The translations under genes were made by a program, and so were the position numbers. A DNA stretch of 60,664 nucleotides, counting the filler, from Trichosphaerium sp. ATCC 40318 (Eukaryota > Protista > Tubulinea), in assembly GCA_038496445.1 (NCBI GenBank). It is 4 parts of 4 records of this genome, joined end to end, with 100 filler letters (N's around TTAATTAATTAA, not from the genome) between each part and the next. Parts side by side here need not be neighbours in the genome. Positions count along the whole stretch, not along the records: positions 34,218 to 49,864 come from JALMLS010000472.1; 3 more parts are not named here. The stretch is one strand, 5' to 3'. Below are positions 34,218 through 49,864 of the stretch, piece after piece. Within the stretch, counting starts at the first letter, position 1, and the number at the start of each line of letters is the position of its first letter. The notes beneath the pieces were generated by a model. The model did no database searches. It was given only the letters and a program-made list of their open reading frames with translations, and was not told the origin of the DNA.

Positions 34218-34254
34218 AATGGCGTTATACAGTAAAATCTTTTTTTTTTGTAGA

Positions 34255-36529
34255 CTAGATAGAATTAACACACGTACCGGATAGTAGATCAATGAACCAT
34301 TCGAAGGCATGACGATCTCTGTTGGACCAATAAAAGTGCACTTTGTTAAGGTTTGTAAGATTTCCTTCGTCTATTTGGTAACGGATGTCCTTTAGGATGG
34401 ATGCCATTGGCGTAACACCGATACCAGCTGAGAAGAGCATCAAATTCTTAAATTTGTAGAACTCCTCTGAAGCAGCTCCATAAGGCCCATCAACGAGCAG
34501 GATAGGCTTTCCGTTTGGTGCAGTCAACATGTTTTCCTGTATAACACCAATTTCTTTTTCTGGGTTGAGAAGCTGGTAGAGTTCTCCTGTCCAATCACCA
34601 ACAATCTAAATTACATTAAATCAGCAAATTTTTTTATAACCTAGCAACAGCACAACTCAAACAGTGTGCTTAACGCCTTTCACTTTAAGCCAGAAATGCA
34701 CGTAAATAAAAAATACAACTACACGTACTCGAATATGAACTGATAAGAAATCTTCGTCAGGACTACTACTGATAGTAAAAGGATGCCACTCGTAGTCAGC
34801 AATATATGGACATTGCAAAAAGATGTATTGACCTGGCTGGTAGTTGAAGGTAGCTTTCTTCATACGAATCTCCAATACGCGTGAAGGGTGTTGTATTGCC
34901 TTTAAAATAATAGTCTTTTGAGAACCACGGATGAGTCTGATAAGACGTTCAAGAGCATAGAACGAAAATGGTCCAAGAACCCAAATCCAAAAGTTTGCAC
35001 GCTCAAGTAGCTCCAATTGACCTTTTTCGTAAAGTGTAAGTGAAAGAAATACAAAAGGATTTTTTCAGTTATGAATCTACACGCGTAACACGCGTAGTTC
35101 AAATTTACAATTACTAAATACTATTTTGTAGACTTGTTTAATATGCATAAAAACGTACCGTGCGCGGCTATGAGACCATAGAAAACAATAAAGAGATGGT
35201 GAGTGTACCAAAAGGCCTCAAACATATTGCTCCTCACGTATTGCACAGCAGACGTGTACATTAGAACCATCACAATACTAGTGAGTACCCCAGTGATACC
35301 AGGAAGGCGAGCAAACACCTACAATAAAAAAATTAAATAAATAAATCTCTTTATACCAACCAACGCAACATAGTATTTAATGACGCAATGGTGACAACAA
35401 AAAAGAACGATTTGGGAAATGAAAAAAACAAAAAAAACAAAACAAAAATGAGCGAAAATGTCGTCCTTCGTTATGCTTTATAGAAGTACGTACAACAACC
35501 CAATAAGATACAGGATCAGGTGAGAGGTTCAATGCAACCAATTCATCGGATGTAGCACGGTTACTTGTGACATTCCAGAAATTAATAAAATGAGCTCCAG
35601 AATGGAATGTAACCAAAACCATTACCCACCAAGCTACGAACTTGTGGAATACTATATTCTTATCTATAGGTAGATACGTGCCAACGAATGAGCCGCGAAG
35701 ACTAAAAATCATCAGCGAAATTTTTTTTTGTTTTTTTCAAATAAGTCTTATTTAGCTTCGTTTTCTTTGCAGTATTCGAGTTGTCAGCTTGTTTTGTTTG
35801 CTCCAAAATTACGTACAAAGATAAAAAGTTTCTCAGTACGCAAACAAGAAGAAACGCCGCGTTAAACTTAATAGCAGCTGCTGTACCGCGAGCAATACAT
35901 AAACCGTGACCAAGGACCTAAAAAAGGTATTTAGCGGCTAATTTAGTTTACTTATTCTTTCTTTAAAAACAACCCATTTACTGTATTGAGCGCGTATGTT
36001 TATAGCAAAAGAGTATTTTTGCGTACTTGAAAAGGAGTAATCTGAATACCTGGTGTAAGGTCGCTTTGGTCTTGTCTTACCATGTAATCTTTGCAATGGC
36101 GTTAGCTAATTGGAATTTCGTAATAACCGTACAGTGGTACCGTTCTCCGATTAACACAATGTTAATTATAACGTAAACTATTATGAATATCAGTTTGACG
36201 CCATCATTTACCCAGTAATCGTGTATTCGTTCGCGTATTGTCTTTTTGAGTTTAGAAGCTGTTGAAGGAGTACCAACGGGATCTATTGAGCCTTGTGGGG
36301 CTGTACTTATTCCAGCCAAAGGCTCTTTGTTGCTCTTTGCCTTTTTGCCAGGTTTTGCAGCTTTAGGTTTATCAAAACTATCGTCGTCCTGTGGCGGTAG
36401 CGCTGGCGGTGCGTTAGTGTATTGCTCAGCCGATTCATCGTCGTCCATTGGAGGCAATGGCGGAAGCCCGCGAGGATTGTTCTCTTCGGGCTCAGGAGGA
36501 AGTGGTGGTGGTGCTCGATTAGATGCCAT
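34255..36529 (-). CDS. nox: NADPH oxidase catalytic subunit (gp91phox-type, Pro-rich N-extension); 3' end lost in gap
   Basis: DKNIVFHKFVA...HSGAHFIN, PGITG, FEAFWYTHHLF, YQPGQYIFL, EWHPFTISS, VGDWT, VDGPYGAAS, AGIGVTP, HFYW. Confidence 0.93.
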
Positions 36530-36671
36530 AGTGTAACAGCGCCAAACAAGTTACTTTTGTGCAGTTTTTTGATTTGGGATAAAAAAAGTCTGGCTAACCT
36601 TTAACGGCACTGACTTTGATTAAAATTGTTTGGAGTAGCTTGTAGGCGTTTATAAACGTTACCAAACCATC

Positions 36672-38811
36672 ATGTCGGCGTATTCTGAGCAAGTGCTCGT
36701 AGATAAGCTTAAAAAACTCTCAGCTACCCAACAGAGCATCCAAAGTACTTATACATATTAATTTCACGTTTTTTGAAACTTCCTTGACGAAGCGTAGCAC
36801 TTTCACATTGGATTATGTACCATCGCAAACGGTACGCTCAGAGCGTAAAGAGATGGTATTCTGAGCTACTAATTGGTGCGTTTTAACCAATAATGCGTTC
36901 AAGTCGGTTTTAATTTCTTATTACGTCTTGATTGAGCTATACGCACGTATACTAACCCTATGGTAGCTGATACAAGTCAGAAACTCACTTTTTTATATCT
37001 GGCGAACGATGTTATGCAACAGAGTCGTAGAAAGGGTGGAGAGTTTATAAAAGAGTTTTCTAGTATAATGGGAGAAGCAATAACACACGTGATAAAGTCA
37101 ACGTCAGCTGGTACAGAGAAGCAAGTTTTACGCCTTATTTCGATATGGGAGGAAAGAAGAGTATTCCCAAAGGCTTTTCTAGATCCTATTGTGGCTTCTG
37201 TTAAAGGACAAACATCAAAACCAGCAAAGGCACGAGATTTTTTGAAAGAAACTTTTTTTTTTTTTTTTTTGGTATTCTTTTTACTGTTGGATTTTTTTAG
37301 TCTCGTGTGACGCCTGCAGGATGGGTTAATTATCGTTTAAACGAACTAACAAATACATCAAAAAAAAAAAAGTTGTAAAAAAAAAATACTTAATTAAAAT
37401 GTCTCGTGTACCCTGCAAGCGTCCAGGAGAGCAACAAAACACGTGATTTATTAATCCTATTTTTTTCTTCTTCATTTTTTTTTTGTTTTTTGGATTTTGT
37501 TTCGTCTCTTCTTTGTGTATTTATTAGTTGATACTTGTTTGTGTTTATATTTATTAATGATGTATTTAGGATACTTTGATGCCTCTGGAACTTCGTCAAA
37601 GACCTGAGAAGCCTAGAAGTAATGATCCAATACAATCTATCAAAAGTTCAATAGAAAAAACATTAATGGTAAAGGATATGCTCGTAGATGATGTTAAGGC
37701 CATAAGAAGCGATTTATTAGATGGTAAATCACTAAGCGATATAAAGAGTACGTTATAGAAAGTATTTTAACCATATACACTTCTCCATTTCGCGTCAAGT
37801 GACTTTTAAAAAAAACACCTTTTCGCAACATCTATACTTTTTCTCTCCATGCTTTTTCTCGCCTACCAAATGAGTTTACCAAGTTTTAAACATGTGATTG
37901 TTTTTATGTATAATGTTTCACTTTTAGATCAACTGCAACTACGAGAACACGCTCTAGAACTCGATGAAGGATGTAAAAAACTTGAACAATTAAAAGATAG
38001 ATTGACTCAAGAAAACAAACTTCGAAATCAATTAACACAACTACTGGGTACGATTATATCTTACCGACCAATTGAATAATTTATCCGAGTATCACCTACT
38101 TCTTACACGCTTTCATTTAGAGAAAGCCTTGGAAGACAATAAAAAATCCATGGAAACAAACAAAACGGCTCTAGAAGATTGTACAAAAAAATTAGCACAA
38201 ACAGAAGAAAGAAAGCTCGATATGAAAGTACGCGAATACACCACTCACTCGCACTATACCGCCGCTTTATTCAAACATATTGCTTATTGTATCTTATAGA
38301 AGCTATTAAGTGAGTTACCTGAAGAAAAGAAAGAGGTAGTCGGAGAAAAGAGAAAAAATCAAACAGAATCAGGAGGTGTTCCTAAAAGGTCTAAAACATA
38401 CAACCCTATACAAGCTATCCTCAACCAATTACTACCTAATCAAGGTAGTAATAATATCCCACCTACTGAAGCATATATTCCTGCGACTGTGAATACTGTT
38501 TCCGGGTTAGGAGGTGTTGTTGGGTACAACGATCAACAATGGGGAAATTATGATAAAGGTCATGGTCTCAATTATGACGGCAGTCAAGGTCCTACACATT
38601 TAGGAGATTTATATAATACAACCCAAGGTACGATTTCCAGATATATTTACTAGTATACTGTTAAAAGAAACGGGTTACGCTTCAAACGTCACCAAACTGT
38701 TTTTTTTTTGAAATATATTTTTTTTTTTTTTTGATACGTTCTGTTCAAGGTGGACTGGGTACCGTTCAGACGCAGACTGCGAATGATAATAGTCAAGGAG
38801 TAATACATTAA
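36672..38811 (+). CDS. RNA Pol II CTD-interacting-domain protein (RPRD1/Rtt103 family)
   Basis: MSAYSEQVLVDKLKKLSATQQSIQ, LSHWIMYHRK, KLTFLYLANDVMQQSRRKG, RLISIWEERRVF; coiled-coil exons follow. Confidence 0.87.
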
Positions 38812-39136
38812 AAAAAGGGTGTAAGGAATCCATATCTCTTTTTCCTCTGGCTGGACTTGTTGTCACAAAGTCTGCCTCACTTGTATATCGAAGTAGTGTA
38901 CACAAAAAAAGCAATAAACCCATACACTTGTATCATACATACTTTTTCTTTAAACCTTGCTTGGTCATCAACCAAGTTTTTTTTTATAGTTTACCATTCT
39001 TATTCTTACTGATTAAGTATTAAAACAAGAGCTCTGGCGTGTTCTACTACAAAAGTACTACAAAAAAAAAACCGTCGCACGCTTTGAATCGGGTTTTGAA
39101 AAAGTCAAATGATCGAGTATTCATACCGCCTCAGTA

Positions 39137-40875
39137 ATGGCAGAGCCGCAATCTTCGTCAGTTAATTTACAATATGTTAACCGTTTGGCCACTGGTTACC
39201 ACCATTCAATGGTAATCGCAGACGATGGCTTTGTTTACACGTGGGGACAAAACGATGACCGCCAATTGGGTAACACAGACGAAAGAAAGAGTTCTATCGC
39301 AAGACCAATAAAATCAGTCATAAATATCGTCTGTATTGCTGCTGGATGGAATCATAGCCTTGCACTTGATTCAAACGGTATTGTGTATGCATGGGGCCGT
39401 AATTCAAATGGTGAATTGGGTCTGGGTGACTTTGTGTCACGTGTTTCGTCACCAACACGTGTTCCAAATCTCAACAATATCACGAAAGTCTCTGCCTTTT
39501 TTGTGAGTATGGCATTATCAAAATCAGGTCATGTCTACTCTTGGGGATACAACTTCTATCAAGGATTGGGTCATTCATTCGACAATTTTCAAGTTTCATC
39601 ACCAGCGGTTATTCCAAATCTTCAAAATGTTCAAAAAATTCAAACTAATCAGTGTGTAAGTGGAGCAATGACATCAACAGGTCATGTCTTTCTTTGGGGA
39701 ACAACAAGAGATGAAGCAATAGATAAATCATTATTCTTGAATCCAAAGACAATTTCACGTGTTCCAAGTATTGATGATGCCACTGATATTGCCATTGGTC
39801 AATATCATGTACTTGTTCTCCTCAAGTCAGGACAAGTATTTTCTTTTGGATACAACTCGAATGGGTGTCTTGGGTTGGGTATTGATGACAAGTATGGCCA
39901 GGGTATCATCAAAGGACTCAATAACATCATATCTGTACATGCTGGTACATGGACATCATTTGCGATTGATGATGAAGGTTGTTTGTTTGGTTGGGGTTTT
40001 GGGAAATGGATTGATTCGTTCAGATCAAACAAACCATTAAAATTACCTGGAAAATATCTTGAGTTTGCCAATAAACAAGGAAATTACTTGGCAATATCTC
40101 ATGACTTTCAGTTGGTCACAGGTGGAAATAATGATTATGGTAAATCAACACCACAAAAGTTGACATTCAACAATCACCAAAAGGTACTTTGTAATCTCAT
40201 TCATCTTTCTGTCTATTTGACAAGTCATTAGCAAACAAACAAAGGTACTTGCGAAGCCGAAGACAATGACATGAAAGCAATGAATGCAGAGTTAAAAGAA
40301 GACAGAAAAGATAAGTACTTGTCAAAAGCTGTGGTTGAGCCCAATCGTGACTACACCAAGTTTGGAGATGCTCCTGATCACCTTGATATCATTCAAGATG
40401 CCCTTGAAGCCTTTAAAATACACCAAAATCGAGATGAATACATCAACAATGTAAGTATCAGAAAATAAGCGATACCTATCTCACATGGTATTTTAGGTTG
40501 ACAATCCTCGCTTGCCACTTGATGTAGACACCTCAATTGTATCTGAACAATCATGGAATGACAAGCCTCATGTTTCAGTCGCTCACACAAAGGTGTCTTG
40601 TTTTAATTTAATTTTCTTCACATTTAATTTTGTTCGTTTAGTCGGAGTTCTGTCCACCTCAAGAGAATCAATCAATCGCTACTCCCAAATATGATTGGAA
40701 GTCAACATTGGCGAGGTTGGGTATTTCAAGTGCAAGAGCACAAGAACTTGGATCGTTGATGAATGAATCAGGTATCAAACCTGGAGACATCACCTCAGAT
40801 GTATTAGAAGAGCTTGAATTCAATCCAATTGAACGTATCAAGGTCATCAAAGCAAAGCGCAAAAATGCTCTATAA
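39137..40875 (+). CDS. RCC1/BLIP-II beta-propeller protein with C-terminal SAM-like domain, copy A
   Basis: Exon 1 (39137-40183) has about seven RCC1 blades (AGWNHSLAL...VYAWGRN..G.LG); last exon WKSTLARLGI...LEELEFNPIERIKVIKA has a SAM-like pattern (inferred). Confidence 0.85.
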
Positions 40876-42418
40876 ATCGATGAAGCGCATATCTTAAGCC
40901 TCCTCAATGATGAATACACCAAAAACAATCGAATATTAACAATTGGTTTTGTAATAGTTTAGATGTCTTACAATAAATACTAGCTTGTTTTGAACAGAAC
41001 AATGACATTATATTAACACATTGAGGGTCACATAGAGAACTTTTTGCTGAGCAGATTGAAAACTAAAAAAAAACCGTCAGTGTGGTTCACAAATGTACGC
41101 TAGAAACTTTATATTACGGCTACAAGTAGACATAGTTATGTAAAACATACTACAAACATACTGGTAACCAAAAACTATCACATGGCTGTAAATTCGTAAA
41201 AAACTGAAAAACGAATGTGCTTGTTTTTGATAATTTTCATTCGAATGGTAAACAGTTTCTGAAAGCCAAAATCACTTTTCAATGGTGCCTTACTATACAT
41301 ACAGTATCTTACATTATGTTACAAAGCTCCTGGGTTCAACTACGGATTTCAACATAAAATATGGCAGAACGCGACCGCCTGTTTCTAAGGCAACGGAAAT
41401 ACATTTCTCTGTATCTAGAAAGGGTGGTACCAAAGTTTCAAAACAGGGCTTGCTGGTCTACCTTATCTTTACACAAATACTCACCAAAGTATAGTACACG
41501 CGATTATACGCGTAGAAAAGAACAATAAGAAGAACTTTTCTTGTTTATTCCAGTCAGTCGTATCCACAGCGCTCAAATACGTTTATTAAATCCATTACAA
41601 CCTATTTAGTACTGTAGTGACCTGCAAGAGTAAACAAGTGGTAGTGGTTCACGGAAAGTATGTTTTACAGTTTTTTCAAGCCAAAAAATGTGCCGAGAAA
41701 GTTCTCGGATCAGGTGCAATTATTGTACACTCTACGTTTACCCAGTGTGTTCTAAACGCATTTTACATGCAAGATATACTTATCGACTACCTAGTAAAAA
41801 GCTCTACACTCAGTCAATTGACTTGTGATAAGAAATGTTAACTAGGGACAGTGACATTCACATTTACCTTTGAGAATATTGGGTAAAACACTAGGCTTTG
41901 GACTTATGTATCAAACACTAACGAAGTCAAAGCCATTGAGAGCATATAAAACGTAAAAAAAGCATGTGGTGCCATGGTACAACATCAACAAAATCACACA
42001 TTTTTAAACGGTTTAGCTGATTTCAGATTTTGTTGCTGAGTTTCTTAGCCGTCAGTTAACCAGCTACAGATTTTTATAGCTGGCTTAGTTGGTACTGGAC
42101 CACGACCAACTCTATTTGTAAACATTGCGCCATACAATATCACCAATAAACAACTATTGCTATTGACTTCAATTTTTTTTCATTTTTTCATTTTTAGTAG
42201 TTTACAGTTTTCTCAACATCGTAGTGCTCCGTTAATTACGCTATTTCTCCAAAAACCCCAGCACTACAGTATCGCTTACACTTGATATCCCATACATACG
42301 TCACGTGATATCAAGTGACTTATACTGATATTTTCATTTTCTACTATCCGAAGTAATTTATTGTACTTTATTTAGGATGCTTCATACTATCGCAGTAAAA
42401 CGAGATACTTGTCACCTA

Positions 42419-43240
42419 TTACACCTCCCACCCAAGATTTAGCTCGATATTATAGATTTGACGCATCAGTATCAGTGTACCTATGCTATCCACTGCTTCC
42501 AAAGCGTACTGCAATGAGCACAAGGTACAATAAAGAGTTGAAAAAGCATGGAAAATGGCTTCGACCCTAAAAAAGAAGTCAGTAACTGAGAAAAAAAAAA
42601 CCACTACAACACACAAGAGCACGTACACAATCATAGACAACTTTGAGGAGGTTCTTCTCTGGGTCTACTTTTTCATCTGCACCGCAAGGGTAGATTATTG
42701 GAGCGCCCTTATCGTTACAGATAACCTTACGAATACCTGTGAAGCTGATTTTTCCAGAATCTGTTTTTGGGCATTTCATGACCTTTCTCTCATCTCCATT
42801 GGCATAGTGAATGTAGCACAATTTTGTAGCGAATGGCATGGTATCATGGTTAACCTTCATTAGGAGTCCACGACCCATACTGAAACTGACCTATCAACAA
42901 AAGATAAGATACAAAGAAACTTAAACTCCAAGCAACTTTGTAACGTACACATTGGACAGAGAAGGCCATCAGCAACAACAACCTTCAAGATTTTTGTGAC
43001 AATTGCATAGTTGATACCATCACCTTGAATTACGTTGTATCTACATAGTAAAACAAAATCGTCAGTAAAGATCAAAATGAGAAAAAAAAAAGATATGCTT
43101 ACCCTTTTTACAACCTTGTTACCCCTTTGAGTTAGTTTCAAATCCGCCAGTCTTAGCACCTGCCTTCAAACCAGCAACAACACAGTCTTTTGGATCACTA
43201 GAATCTAGGCAAATAACCATGATTGAGTTACCACGCTCCT
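42419..43240 (-). pseudogene. NAMPT: Nicotinamide phosphoribosyltransferase C-terminal fragment, degenerate
   Basis: VICLDSSDP (for VIRPDSGDP), TNSKGNKV, VIQGDGINY, GMGRGLLMKVNHDTMPFATK, PKTDSGKIS; no N-terminal half recognised upstream. Confidence 0.75.
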
Positions 43241-43854
43241 AAAGGGCTGTGAGAAAAGAAAATACTCGTCGAATAAAAAAAAAACAAAAAAAAAAAAAAC
43301 AGTTTCAATCTGTGCATTATAAAATTGCTCGTGTTTAGCTTTACAATCTTCACGTGGGTAGGTTCATTTTGTTAGATGCAAAGTTGAGTTTCGCGTTCTT
43401 TTTGTGGATGTAGCACTCAAAAGTACTTGCCAAGACAAAGACAATCGTTTAAATAGGCGCAGGAACAGGCGTTTTCACGTGTTTACTTGGTAATTGGCCT
43501 TACAAACGCCCACGTACCATAATTGATGTTTATTTAGTTCCAACGAACGCTAAAATTATCGCTGTTGAGCCTGTTGAAGGTACGAGTATCTAGTGAGGTG
43601 GTTTAAACCAACATCTATGTACCTATGTTTTTATGTCGCTTTGATATCCTCTAACGCTATTAGACAATGAAGTACATAACGTAAAAAGGGTTGAAGCGAT
43701 TCGGTTTTAGAATTCTAAGAGTATCAATGCTACCCCTTATTGTAATGTAGTAACTCATCTGCGGCAGGTTTAAAACCTACCATAAGAAATGGCGTCAAGC
43801 TTAGTAGTTCAAAAGCCAACGAATATTGAGCACGTCACGTAACCTAACGTTTTA

Positions 43855-45892
43855 ATGGCAGAGCCGCAATCTTCGTCGGGTAATTTACAATATGTTAACC
43901 GTTTGGCCACTGGTTACGCACATTCAATGGTAATCGCAGACGATGGCTTTGTTTACACGTGGGGACTAAACGAGTACCGCCAATTGGGTAACACAGACGA
44001 AAAAAAGAGTTCTATCGCAAGACCAATAAAATCAGTCATAAATATCGTCTGTATTGCTGCTGGATGGCTTCATAGCCTTGCAGTTGATTCAAACGGTATT
44101 GTGTATGCATGGGGCTGTAATTCAGATGGTAAATTGGGTCTGGGTGACTTTGCGTCACCTGTTTCGTCACCAACACGTGTTCCAAATCTCAACAATATCA
44201 CGAAAGTCTCTGCCTATGAAGTGAGTATGGCATTATCAAAATCAGGTCATGTCTACTCTTGGGGAGACAACAGATGGGATGGATTGGGTCATTCATTCGA
44301 CAATTTGCAAGTTTCATCACCAGCGGTTATTCCAAATCTTCAAAATGTTCAAAAAATTCAAACTAACTCGTATGTAAGTGGAGCAATGACATCAACAGGT
44401 CATGTCTTTCTTTGGGGAACAACTAAAGATATCTGGGAAACAACAAAAGACGAAGCAAGAGATAAATCATTATTCTTGAATCCAAAGACAATTTCACGTG
44501 TTCCAAGTATTGATGATGCCACTGATATTGCCATTGGTGATTGGCATGTACTTGTTCTCCTCAAGTCAGGACAAGTATTTTCTTTTGGACACAACCACAA
44601 TGGGTGTCTTGGGTTGGGTATTGATGACGATTATGGCCAGGGTATCATCAAAGGACTCAATAACATTAAATCTGTCCATGCTGGTTACTATACATCATTT
44701 GCGATTGATGATGAAGGTTGTTTGTTTGGTTGGGGTCAAGGAAAACTTATTGATTCGTTCAAATCAAACAAACCATTAAAATTACCTGGAAAATATCTTG
44801 AGTTTGCCACTAAACAATATCATTACTTGGCAATATCTCATGACTTTCAGTTGGTCACAGGTGGTAGTAACTATTGTGGTCAATCAACACCACAAAAGTT
44901 AACATTCAACAATCACCAAAAGGTACTTTGTAATCTCATTCATCTTTCTGTATTTGACAAGTCATTAGCAAACAAACAATACAATCGACACTCAACAATT
45001 GGATGAACAGCCAATCAACAAGTCATCGATCAAAGTACATCCATCCGAAGAGATGTACATGTCAAATAAGGCCATTCGAGATGTACCTCAGAAATTTGGA
45101 CAAACAGAACAAGATCTTCAGATTCTCGAAAATGCTCGTCATCTCATTCAATCCAAACAGCAAAGTAAGTGCTCATCACTATTCTTATGTTTTGTAACTC
45201 TTTTATACTTTAAGGACAAGAAGCCTCTATTGATTCAATCAACTACAATCCACCCACCAATGAATCAAATCAACATCCACCTTTAATCGATGTTGATGAG
45301 TTTGTATCAAGACAATCATGGGTTCAAGATAAGTTTGAAACGATCAACCTTGGCAACGTACAACCAAGATATTTCATTTAACACATATTTATTTACGTCA
45401 ATGTTAAGGATGCTTCTTCCGATTCAATTGGAGCCAAGTCTACCTCTTCGCACTTCAATGGCGATTCATCCATAAAGAACCCTTCTCAACCTTCTGTTGA
45501 TGTAGATGACCTTGTTTCACAACAGTACTGGAAGAACAAGATTGAATCTATTAATATTGATAAGAGAGATGTATCAATACCAGTTGTACCTGAAACAGTA
45601 GACATTGGCAACGTACGACTCTTTCTCTCAGGAGCGATACATCACCTAACTTTTATTGCAGCCTTCAGCATCAGCTCCAGTTGTACCAGAACAACCGTTG
45701 AGAGGGAAAGTTGAATGGGTGAATATCTTGATATTGGCAGGGATTGAGAGATCAAGAGCTCAAACACTTGGATCAATGTTGGATGAAGCATGTATTGAGA
45801 TACAAGAGTTAAAAGGAGAAATAATGAAAGTGTTTGATTTTACAGCAATTGAGCGTGCAAAAGTTATCAAGTATAAAAAAGACCATTGTTAA
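43855..45892 (+). CDS. RCC1/BLIP-II beta-propeller protein with C-terminal SAM-like domain, copy B
   Basis: Exon 1 (43855-44922) is near-identical in scaffold to copy A; middle exons differ; tail WVNILILAGIERSRAQTLGSML...FTAIERAKVIKY. Confidence 0.85.
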
Positions 45893-46552
45893 ATCAATAA
45901 TAAATAGTAGTTTACAAAAAAAACGTGTTTATTCTCATTTCTGCTGATTCATGTCGATCACATCTCAACAAGTTCCACTTGTGTACACTGCGTATTTGTG
46001 CTTATTAAGTAGTGAAGGGGTGTTGGAGGCAACTATGGCTATTCTTGAAGGTTTCTTTTAATTATCTTTCGACTGGGAGTCACATTCACAAGTCGCTACA
46101 ATTGAGCTCACAAGTGGAATGCAAAATGTAACTTCTTTATCAGCTCAAGCGATTTCGTCCTTTTTGGCACATGATGACTTTTTTTTTAATTACTATTGGA
46201 TGTATTCTTGGCGTTATATTGTTGATTGGCCTAATCTGTATGTCACGTTTTTTGTTGTTGCCTTTTTTTTTTCTGAAAACGACGCGGTCGTCAGACAGGG
46301 TGACTCAACATTAGACAGGTTTGGGCTTGAAAAGGTACAAAGTCCAAGACGCTATGCCACGTGTTTTAATAGTTATTTTCGCACGTAAATCTAAACATAA
46401 ACAGTACACTACGGTTCAATAAAAAGTGAAATAATAAAGTTGTCTACCAAGCAAGAGAACTTTTAAATTAATTGGTTCTACATCTAATAAATGTGACTTT
46501 TTTTTTTTTGGTGTGATATTGTGCTTTCTACCTAAGTTTGTCCGTGACATAC

Positions 46553-49500
46553 TCAAAATCCAGGTACCCTTTCAGTAACAGGTGAACATCTATTTGAAGA
46601 TCCTGGACATGTCGCTTCAATGTAACACTTCCACAAGCCTGACTGCCTAAAGAATTTGTTTAGATGAGTTTTTTTTCTTTTTTCTTGTGGTTTGAATTAA
46701 CCTTACCTCAACAATTCTACAGTTCCCTTCCTGAAAACAGAGCTTGCATTAGGGTAACTTGTTTTATCTCTGAATTTAAATAACAGAAGACCAGCATTGC
46801 TATCCCAATGCCAAGCAAGAGAATCAGGAGAAGACCAAACCTGCAAACACAAAATTGTTCAGTTTTCACAAACGCTAGTTTTTGTTGTTTAACTGGTACC
46901 TGACTTGCAGAGTTTACCCTACGTCCATTGAATCGTGCTGTGTTACCATTCTCTTTACAATAAACAGTAAAACTTGATGATCTCGGATAATGAAATCCAG
47001 TAACAAGACCTTCTTCATTAGAACGATACCAAATGCGACCATCGATTATCAACTTTTTTGGTGTACCATCTTTATACCAAAAATGCCATCCTATATTTTT
47101 CTCAAGAGGTCCACAAACGCCTTGCAAAGTTAGAGCAGACTAAAATCCATAGTATGGTAAGTATTGTACCTGTGTTTGGTGTGATGATAACACTTCTCTT
47201 TGAATTGATTTTAGAGCCAAACAAAGACGCTTTTCCGATGTGATATGTTGTACCTGTAAATAGACGTTAACCAATTCTCATTACATTAGAACTATTGTTT
47301 TCTATTACCAGCTTGTCCGTTCTGATCTACAGCAGGTAAATCATTGTCCATTATACCAGGTGATTCAACATTAAGCCATCCAACTCTTCTAACATTATTT
47401 GGGTCTTCACAATACCACACGTTCAAAGTTGAGTGTAAGTTACAGTTTGCACCGAAGTTCCACCAATCATTAGTGTATCCAGACGCTGAACCCCATATAG
47501 TTCTCTACCATACACAATAAGAAACGGACAGAGAAGTAAAGTAATAACAACAAGAAAACAATTTTCAATTTATACGTACTTTGTTGTTACCAATGATAGT
47601 TCCATCCCAATCCACAAGATTCCAATATCGCCAAGCGTTATTGTTCTTCTCGACTGTAATACGTGGGTGAAATCTAAAGCGTACAGGAGAGTTGATAAAC
47701 TTCATATTAGACTGCGCACTAATCCCCTAAAACACAAAGAAAGTTAAAAATAAAACCAACTGTCATCTTAAAGTCGAACCTGAGGCGTGAAAAAGTCGCT
47801 GTGCGTTAGAGAGTCAATGGCGTATCCAGTTATAGAAGGGTTTCTATGGAATCAAAGGTAAGATAAAATGTCAAATATACTAAGGTGCCTTGGGTGTTTG
47901 TTGTAATTCACCATTGTACAATCTAATAGTATTGCTTGGCTTGATGTATCATAGTACCGAAACCCTTCAGTTGTATCGCTGTTTTTATAATACACGGCAA
48001 CATTAATATTATCAGTGTATTGTTGAATGATAGCGTGATTAATGAGACCTTCACCAAAGAGCATACCAGCTAACAGAAAGCGTCAACAAAAAAAAACTTG
48101 CAAATCAAAAAAAAAGTTGTACCTCGTCGAATGTCATACGCTTCATAGTTGATCACTTCTGGCCTCATTCCCCAATGATTAATACCCATATTAGAAGCCC
48201 AAATGCGTGTATTTCTGAATATCATAGATACTTGATTATTTGTGACTCCATCACGTGAAACTCTTCCTTTTCTTCCTGTAAAATACCTCAAAGTATTGCT
48301 ATTCCCAACATAACTCAAGTCCCCTCCGACATAGACACATGCTACATTCTCCCAGAATGTACCTGATGAATGACATTCATTACCATCAAACTCTTTGAGT
48401 GGTCTTCGCATAGGTCTTTCGTTAACATTTCTGTGATTTCCAATCGGTTTTTCGAAGTTTGGAAACGTGAATCCAGCGAAACCTCCGCTAGCGCTGTTAC
48501 CAATGATTGTATTCCATGCATTAGAGAAGTAAAAAGCAGACGCGGCAATATCGGCAGGTTGTATGAGGTTTGAATGACCATCAACTGTTGTACCAGCTTG
48601 ACCTGTTCCAAGAAGCCAGTTTCCATTTTGAGCTGTCTTAAAAAAGATGTTAGCACTTCGTTCTAAAAACTTAAAATATCTTGTTGTTTGAACTACTTTA
48701 GTGCTAACAATCGACTTTATTATGGGTTGTAAAATTAATGAATAACGCAGTCATAGACATAGTTGGTAAGGCATAAAGTGGCTTTTTGTTTCAAACAAAA
48801 AAAAAACAGGATAAAAAACGCAACTGGTGGAGAAATGAGTCTAATGAAAGCGCCCAGGTTGTATGATATTGTATTATCCTCTTCTACGCCATCCTCAATA
48901 TAGAAACAATGACCGTTAGTATCATATGCAACATTCTCGGTTACAAGAACATTGTTTGTTCCTACATCTTTTTAGTTTCCAAGACAACAAATATGACTTC
49001 CTTACCGTGAATGGTTATGCATCTGAAGTACGAGAATGTGATAGAATTGTCAGAAAAGTAGCTATTAGATGGCGTCCCAGCCATGTGCCTGTAAAATAAC
49101 ACTTGTCAATCTTTCTGCAAGACAGTATAGAGATACGCACATATGCAAAGGATAGCGTGCTATGTGATTGAGTTGACCAAACCTTATTGTTCTGACGCCG
49201 GATATTCTTCCTTCGTTTGAAATAAGCACGTGGCCACCGTATTTATCTCCATCAGAAGAAGCATGTGATTCCAGGACAATCTTCCTAGACAACAAACCAA
49301 CCTAACAAAGCAGTTAAGGTTTGTTTTTTAATCTTTGGTTACGGACCTCGGCCTGATATTCTTTTCCAGCGTAATGGTAGTATTTTAAAGGTTCATTAAC
49401 TTGTATACGATTGTTACTCACTTTCGTTAGTGTTCGTATTTCGTTTTCAGTGTAGCGAATATTATCAACATAAGTAGATGTGATAAAAACAACTTCTTGA

Positions 49501-49864
49501 CCAACTTCCCAGTTTACATTCTGTTGAAGAACCACCTTAATATCACCAGGATATACTACAAGTATTATAGTTAAGAGCCAAAATTGTAAATCAAATGTTT
49601 AGATGCATCTAAAGGTACCTGTTCTAGCAAGGCGAGTCCAGGTCGGAAAGTAACGTTTTCCGTGAATATCAATTTCGCCATTTCCATAAACACCAATTCC
49701 CTTTCTAGACATTGCTGTTAGATGCTATGGCATTGTTTCTGAAGAAATTTACTTCAAAATACGCACGTGATAATATTAGGATTAAAAGAAGAAGGCTTTG
49801 AACCATGGAAGATAATACGGATGTTGCTGTTGAGACGACAAGTTGGAGATCCGATTCTCAATTG
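46553..49864 (-). CDS. G8-domain / parallel beta-helix protein (CEMIP/PKHD1L-like architecture); 5' end lost in gap
   Basis: IGSPTCRLNSNIRIIFHG, IDIHGKRYFPTWTRLART, NWEVGQEVV, YQAEVGLLSRKI, GQLNHIARYPLH, RCITIHG, GHCFYIEDGVEEDN. Confidence 0.8.

Follow-up and report, generated by a model that had tools for sequence, protein, structure and literature searches.

Diversity-generating retroelements (DGRs), the templated antigenic variation of vlsE and the VSG mosaics, and micro-conversion in the major histocompatibility complex (MHC) all place variable residues on a binding surface and alter them in multi-base patches. The HNWD/NWD NLR proteins of the fungus Podospora anserina (het-d, het-e, het-r) carry WD40 repeats of high internal conservation that undergo concerted evolution both inside single genes and between them, and in which four diversifying codons per repeat lie on the interaction surface (PMC12222747, PMC4986451). 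Here, we examine two RCC1 genes, A and B, of the protist Trichosphaerium sp. ATCC 40318 (Tubulinea; assembly GCA_038496445.1), which lie in a 15.6-kb piece (34218-49864; JALMLS010000472.1) of a 60,664-nt stretch (the window, along which all positions are counted). Their propellers share an almost identical scaffold, joined to far more diverged tails, and differ chiefly in loops at the same two places of each blade; this pattern is real, well supported and wider than was apparent from the DNA sequence alone.

Variable sites on one face of the propeller

Codon alignment of exon 1 from the two genes (Table 1) yields 42 replaced codons, nine synonymous codons and a 21-nt in-frame insertion (seven residues) in B, exactly the figures that an earlier note on this DNA had given as approximate; likewise, seven of the nine synonymous codons adjoin a replaced codon (P = 2e-4), as had been counted there by hand. 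Loop windows, covering the turn G-x-x-H together with the six codons that follow W-G, were drawn with knowledge of the earlier list of changes, but set uniformly on all seven blades; they occupy 56 of the 349 codons and hold 31 of the 42 replacements (hypergeometric P = 5e-20), which bears out the recurrence at two places per blade that the note had described. Its remarks on multi-base changes and on aromatic residues also hold: replacements of two or three bases make up 15 of the 31 loop changes versus 1 of the 11 outside the windows, and of the 62 variable residues in the loops 24 are Tyr, Trp, Phe or His, as against 35 of the 293 in the scaffold (P = 2e-6). The 75 base differences gather into 23 clusters, where 39 would be expected from a uniform distribution (minimum 27 in 5000 shuffles), a dense example being the eight changes within the 15 nt of 39548-39562. 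Third codon positions contribute 25 of the 75, scaffold differences are also inclined to cluster (P = 0.03), and only one synonymous difference stands isolated (40162).

Exon 1 scores above the Pfam cut-off for RCC1 repeats and encodes a seven-bladed propeller of the RCC1/BLIP-II superfamily, beginning at about residue 14. An AlphaFold2 model built with an alignment has a predicted local distance difference test score (pLDDT) of 86, and Foldseek gives template-modelling (TM) scores of 0.85 to UVR8 and 0.79 to HERC2 RLD2. In this model, the variable sites correspond to the turn between strands A and B and to the start of the C-D loop, which by geometry lie on the same face of the four-stranded meander. 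Positions 71-72 align with Trp285 and Arg286 of UVR8 (located through the chains of the W285A mutant), which we take to belong to the UVR8 interaction surface. Moreover, an ungapped match places B positions 72, 88, 90 and 91 on L3267, D3283, D3285 and H3286 of HERC2 RLD2 (a numbering that assumes a three-residue tag offset, as inferred from the construct), and these four top-face residues touch the DxDKDxD peptide (PMC13748646); positions 72, 88 and 91 are variable, and position 90 also maps to a HERC2 contact. The model, the UVR8 alignment and the HERC2 contacts together support the previous assignment of the variable loops to the ligand-binding face.

Both genes belong to a larger, expressed family. 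Three studies supplied four runs, whose RNA contigs align to 37550-41300 at 80-100% identity (141, 100, 35 and 15 contigs per run); they give neither copy number nor expression level, but their depth is concentrated on gene A and spliced joints are visible. The runs contain RNA of the same species, as the RPRD1-like gene nearby is found spliced, and with almost no differences, in runs X1-X3 (X7 does not reach that gene). Forty of the 476 variant rows were examined, and at the 36 best-supported places in exon 1 the variant letter lies inside a loop window in 23 cases (P = 1e-10) and matches the letter of B in 16. A partly independent check comes from letters found in neither A nor B: among the codons bearing them at these 36 places, 9 of 17 fall in the windows (P = 5e-4). 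A single variant may be common to up to eight contigs, a further paralogue has an insertion of ~18 nt in the same blade-4 loop that is duplicated in B, and loose contig ends show further tails. The spliced contigs and their range of identities therefore support the claim that A and B are part of a larger variable family.

One paralogue contig, abundant in X2, X3 and X7 (three studies), has its first blade rearranged upstream of window position 39242. If the loose letters abut there, it is frameshifted, and would represent an expressed pseudogene or a member with a shortened N terminus, which might also serve as a conversion donor.

Diverged tails and the history of the loops

DNA identity between A and B extends from 2 nt before the ATG, through intron 1, to 11 nt inside exon 2, and within it the scaffolds are 98% identical. 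Upstream of this tract, the DNA of the two genes is unrelated (P = 0.31); downstream, the proteins of exon 2 are weakly similar (shuffle P = 0.03), and the last domains are 38% identical (E = 8e-13). Both tails are old homologues, far more diverged than the propeller exons. A young propeller exon on old tails implies recombination, and the old tails, which the earlier note had overlooked, are the main evidence for concerted evolution.

The loops, in turn, bear signs of an age greater than that of the scaffold. Replacement (dN) and silent (dS) divergences are, respectively, 0.018 and 0.030 in the scaffold, and 0.48 and 0.32 in the loops (two sequences); loop dS is approximately ten times scaffold dS, although path-averaging can inflate the former, and the difference is significant for the corresponding proportions of silent differences (pS; P = 2e-4). 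Silent changes in otherwise unchanged codons occur in 5 of 52 codons in or beside loops versus 4 of 255 elsewhere (P = 0.009); in six loop codons, the number of base changes exceeds what the amino-acid pair requires. Additionally, the two units of the duplication in B differ to an extent (Table 1) that makes the duplication older than the scaffold similarity. Silent hitchhikers near the loops are predicted if the loops are older than the scaffold, as patchy conversion among many paralogues combined with diversifying selection would yield, but not if selection acted on point mutations after one recent duplication.

The account that we consider reasonably probable is that the scaffold is homogenized by patchy conversion, and that older loop variants are retained and exchanged under diversifying selection, which results in a repertoire of binders. 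In this account, A and B are members of an expanded, expressed cytosolic family, in which a flexible linker connects an RCC1 propeller to a C-terminal helical domain that is small and possibly SAM-like. They are old paralogues, and ectopic recombination, in the form of gene conversion from one member to another and often over short patches, would repeatedly overwrite exon 1 and intron 1, keeping the scaffold almost free of differences; on the ligand face, diversifying selection would block the homogenization of the 14 top-face loops, leaving them with older variants that are swapped among paralogues in short tracts along with adjacent silent changes. The outcome would be one frame with many specificities, the most likely targets being foreign proteins, whether they come from giant viruses, from intracellular bacteria or from non-self cells, with the signal passing via the tail. 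The earlier note had proposed a variable recognition-receptor family; the variable family and the ligand face stand, whereas the receptor function is suggested only by analogy.

Several points weigh against this account. Within the loops, dN/dS is 1.5, which is not significantly above 1 (P = 0.19; two sequences); on the test that had been suggested for the loops, then, replacements exceed the scaffold silent rate by far (loop proportion of replacement differences, pN, versus scaffold pS, P = 3e-16), but do not significantly exceed the silent rate of the loops themselves. Multi-base mutations together with selection could imitate short tracts, and the comparison rests on two full genes. In some instances (39428 is one), the letters of A and B are both absent from the RNA contigs, and the C-terminal domain has no Pfam or PDB match for SAM.

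We regard as unlikely, albeit deserving of consideration, that a single recent duplication or conversion placed exon 1, as a cassette, on a paralogous tail that was already old, and that the loops then diverged by positive selection on point or multi-base mutations, without exchange. The sharp ends of the shared tract are as expected from such a copy, successive replacements are able to alter all three codon positions, and paralogue identities of 85-100% fit birth-and-death evolution; the enrichment of silent changes beside the loops, the tenfold excess of loop dS and the duplicated units of B, which are much more diverged than the scaffold, all argue against it.

Dedicated, ongoing diversification in clonal lineages seems improbable. 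Here, the top-face loops would be rewritten during clonal growth, through short templated conversion from paralogues, silent donors or pseudogenes, or through site-directed hypermutation (compare vlsE, chicken immunoglobulin and DGRs); if true, this would give a unicellular eukaryote a receptor repertoire of an anticipatory, antibody-like kind. Dense multi-base patches such as that at 39548-39562, the many variants inside one sample and the abundant, apparently frameshifted transcript as a possible donor would all suit such a process, but the source bases A, C, G and T follow composition (ratios 0.93-1.14), a mutation spectrum unlike that of the DGR, repeat-induced point mutation (RIP) or AID type of mutagenesis, which we reject on this ground. 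Moreover, the 15.6-kb piece contains no donor above chance (15 scattered 11-mer matches, none clustered; elsewhere in the genome was not searched), no extra RCC1 fragment and no reverse-transcriptase-like open reading frame that was noticed, and one variant contig recurs in three studies, which indicates that it is stable, not somatic. The note had invoked strong selection with either micro-tract conversion or targeted mutagenesis: selection and tract-wise recombination are implicated, but targeted mutagenesis is not supported, there being no base bias and, in the piece, no donor or template above chance.

More doubtful still is that the diversification is real but serves substrate adaptors or inhibitors, for example proteins that act as decoys for pathogen enzymes, or that derive from F-box-RCC1 genes of giant viruses retained by the host. 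The best protein matches are indeed intronless F-box-like RCC1 proteins (33-37% identity), the structural neighbours include F-box-RCC1 proteins of Pithovirus and Marseillevirus, and BLIP-II, which has the same fold, is an inhibitor; however, this identity is only at the generic RCC1 level, A and B have introns and lack the F-box, and a search of viral contigs found no relative. Finally, it is scarcely credible that A and B are assembly chimeras of collapsed paralogues or alleles: no RNA contig covers a whole gene, and the gene that separates them has a 1-nt frameshift, possibly an error of assembly, but every change keeps the frame and lies on one structural face, the flanks and tails of A and B are distinct, B-specific letters and one A-specific loop are present in independent RNA contigs, and a chimera could change the combinations of loops, not the pattern itself.

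Gene anatomy and genomic setting

Gene A has four exons and encodes 531 residues. One RNA contig is identical to it across 40103-40183, and contigs stop or jump at 40183, the acceptor of intron 1 at 40231 being inferred from the frame; the intron 40451-40496 corresponds to a joint in RNA contigs, and 40593-40641 is found spliced in all four runs. Gene B, with five predicted exons and 613 residues, has exons 2-5 that are predicted from the open frame and GT..AG introns, as the RNA comparison did not cover its tail. The exons were searched against databases one by one, and joined only for checks of frame and hydropathy; the latter revealed no signal peptide or membrane segment in either protein. 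The linker of A has one copy of a motif, D-V-D-x-x-(V/I)-(V/S)...Q-x-W, and that of B has two, with every copy in a separate exon; this suggests a short linear motif multiplied by exon duplication. The C-terminal helical domain is possibly SAM-like: three SAM clusters appear among its Atlas matches (0.79-0.84), which we treat as a lead only, and the database search found no homologues of the C-terminal exon.

Table 1. Features of the two RCC1 genes and their neighbours (window positions)
Feature	Position	Strand	Description
NADPH oxidase gene	34218-36529	-	2.6 kb upstream of gene A; multi-exon, respiratory burst oxidase type; N-terminus rich in proline
Gene A exon 1	39137-40183	+	Complete seven-bladed RCC1 propeller, 349 aa, hypervariable top-face loops; Pfam WD40_RLD/RCC1
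Gene A intron 1	40184-40231	+	48 nt, GT..AG; differs from B intron 1 only by a 2-nt indel
Gene A exon 2	40232-40450	+	Linker; DNA identity to B stops after 11 nt
Gene A exon 3	40497-40592	+	Linker with one D-V-D-x-x-x-S motif
Gene A exon 4	40642-40875	+	C-terminal helical domain, possibly SAM-like (lead)
Phosphoribosyltransferase-like fragment	~42480-43245	-	Nicotinamide/nicotinate type, C-terminal; between the two RCC1 genes
Gene B exon 1	43855-44922	+	RCC1 propeller, 356 aa; loop residues unlike those of A
Tandem duplication in gene B	44413-44454	+	21 nt, blade-4 loop; units differ at 6 of 21 bases
Gene B intron 1 and first 11 nt of exon 2	44923-44979	+	Intron of 46 nt; 3' end of the tract common to A
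Gene B exons 2-5 (predicted)	44969-45164, 45215-45357, 45409-45612, 45662-45892	+	Linker, two D-V-D motifs (second and third of these exons), C-terminal helical domain
Large multi-exon gene	~46560-49864	-	C-terminal membrane segment predicted

The 15.6-kb piece has a GC content of 37.1%, and its introns, of ~46-180 nt, are eukaryotic in character. These values are compatible with the GC content of 37.7% and the mean intron of 75 bp given for Trichosphaerium sp. (PMC10521059), whereas the GC contents of Cochliopodium minus (26%) and Echinamoeba silvestris (48%) differ from that of the piece. No evidence links the NADPH oxidase functionally to gene A. The RPRD1-like CID/CREPT gene, a further neighbour, shows in run X2 a few base differences from the window and a 3-nt insertion (38188, 38197, 38458), which suggests a second strain or allele. 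The identity of the phosphoribosyltransferase-like fragment rests on a weak Pfam match and a reading of the sequence; its frame shifts by one base near 43120 and its 5' half is not evident, and it is either a pseudogene or an assembly error. The large gene beyond B resembles, by eye, the G8-domain/fibrocystin-like proteins, although the tested exons have no Pfam match. Neither Rfam matches nor tandem arrays were found.

Comparison with known systems

No close homologue came to light: in a set of 5.8 billion proteins no match exceeded 39% identity, a search of representative proteins returned giant multi-repeat proteins only, and viral and metagenome contigs contained no close homologue. A literature search, which did not reach most subscription journals, found no description of a hypervariable RCC1 family.

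The RCC1-like domains of UVR8, HERC2 RLD2, RPGR and BLIP-II have the same fold, and the variable sites of A and B match top-face binding residues (PMC13748646). There, however, the face stays constant to suit one fixed partner, whereas in A and B it is the most variable part.

The F-box-RCC1 proteins of giant viruses (Pithovirus, Marseillevirus and Orpheovirus types) have similar repeats and give the best sequence scores, but A and B are spliced, lack the F-box and lie among eukaryotic neighbours; at the identity given above, the match is too distant to claim a viral origin for them. Tandem intronless F-box-like RCC1 genes also occur on short contigs, at loci L001 and L002 (P0001-P0003, P0010, P0011), and are probably derived from giant viruses. 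Among these paralogues, identity is 0-33% at the same top-face loops versus 34-63% elsewhere (few positions compared); their scaffolds, unlike those of A and B, are therefore not homogenized.

With DGRs, vlsE, the VSG mosaics and MHC micro-conversion, A and B share variation that falls on a binding surface and in multi-base patches. They differ in having no adenine bias, and no template repeat, reverse-transcriptase-like open reading frame or donor cassette noticed in the 15.6-kb piece.

The HNWD proteins of Podospora, in which recognition of non-self sets off cell death, offer the nearest parallel. In both cases a beta-propeller combines a strongly conserved scaffold with a few hypervariable codons per blade, at fixed positions on the binding face, and the concerted evolution between HNWD members may have a counterpart here, as a young scaffold and intron on old tails (two genes) would suggest. 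There are also differences: the fold is RCC1 and not WD40, the propeller is N-terminal and is followed by a small helical tail, and the organism is a protist and not a fungus. NACHT, NB-ARC and HET domains are absent, the tails of 182-257 residues being too short and of low complexity, and the tail exons that were scanned having no such Pfam match. Moreover, HNWD repeats are more than 80% identical to one another, whereas the blades of one RCC1 gene are 7-38% identical (mean 24%); whole domains are therefore homogenized between paralogues, not repeats within a gene.

Little is known of the ways in which phagotrophic protists recognize giant viruses, intracellular bacteria or non-self cells, and an RCC1 family with a variable face would be a concrete candidate for a receptor repertoire, through which the question becomes testable. 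The positions that tolerate free substitution also reveal the propeller as a natural binder scaffold. Overall, we conclude that this RCC1 family works like the HNWD sensors but is not a member of their family: a known evolutionary strategy is here deployed on a new fold, in a protist, which would provide an independent case of a concerted scaffold with a diversified face beyond the WD40 sensors of fungi.

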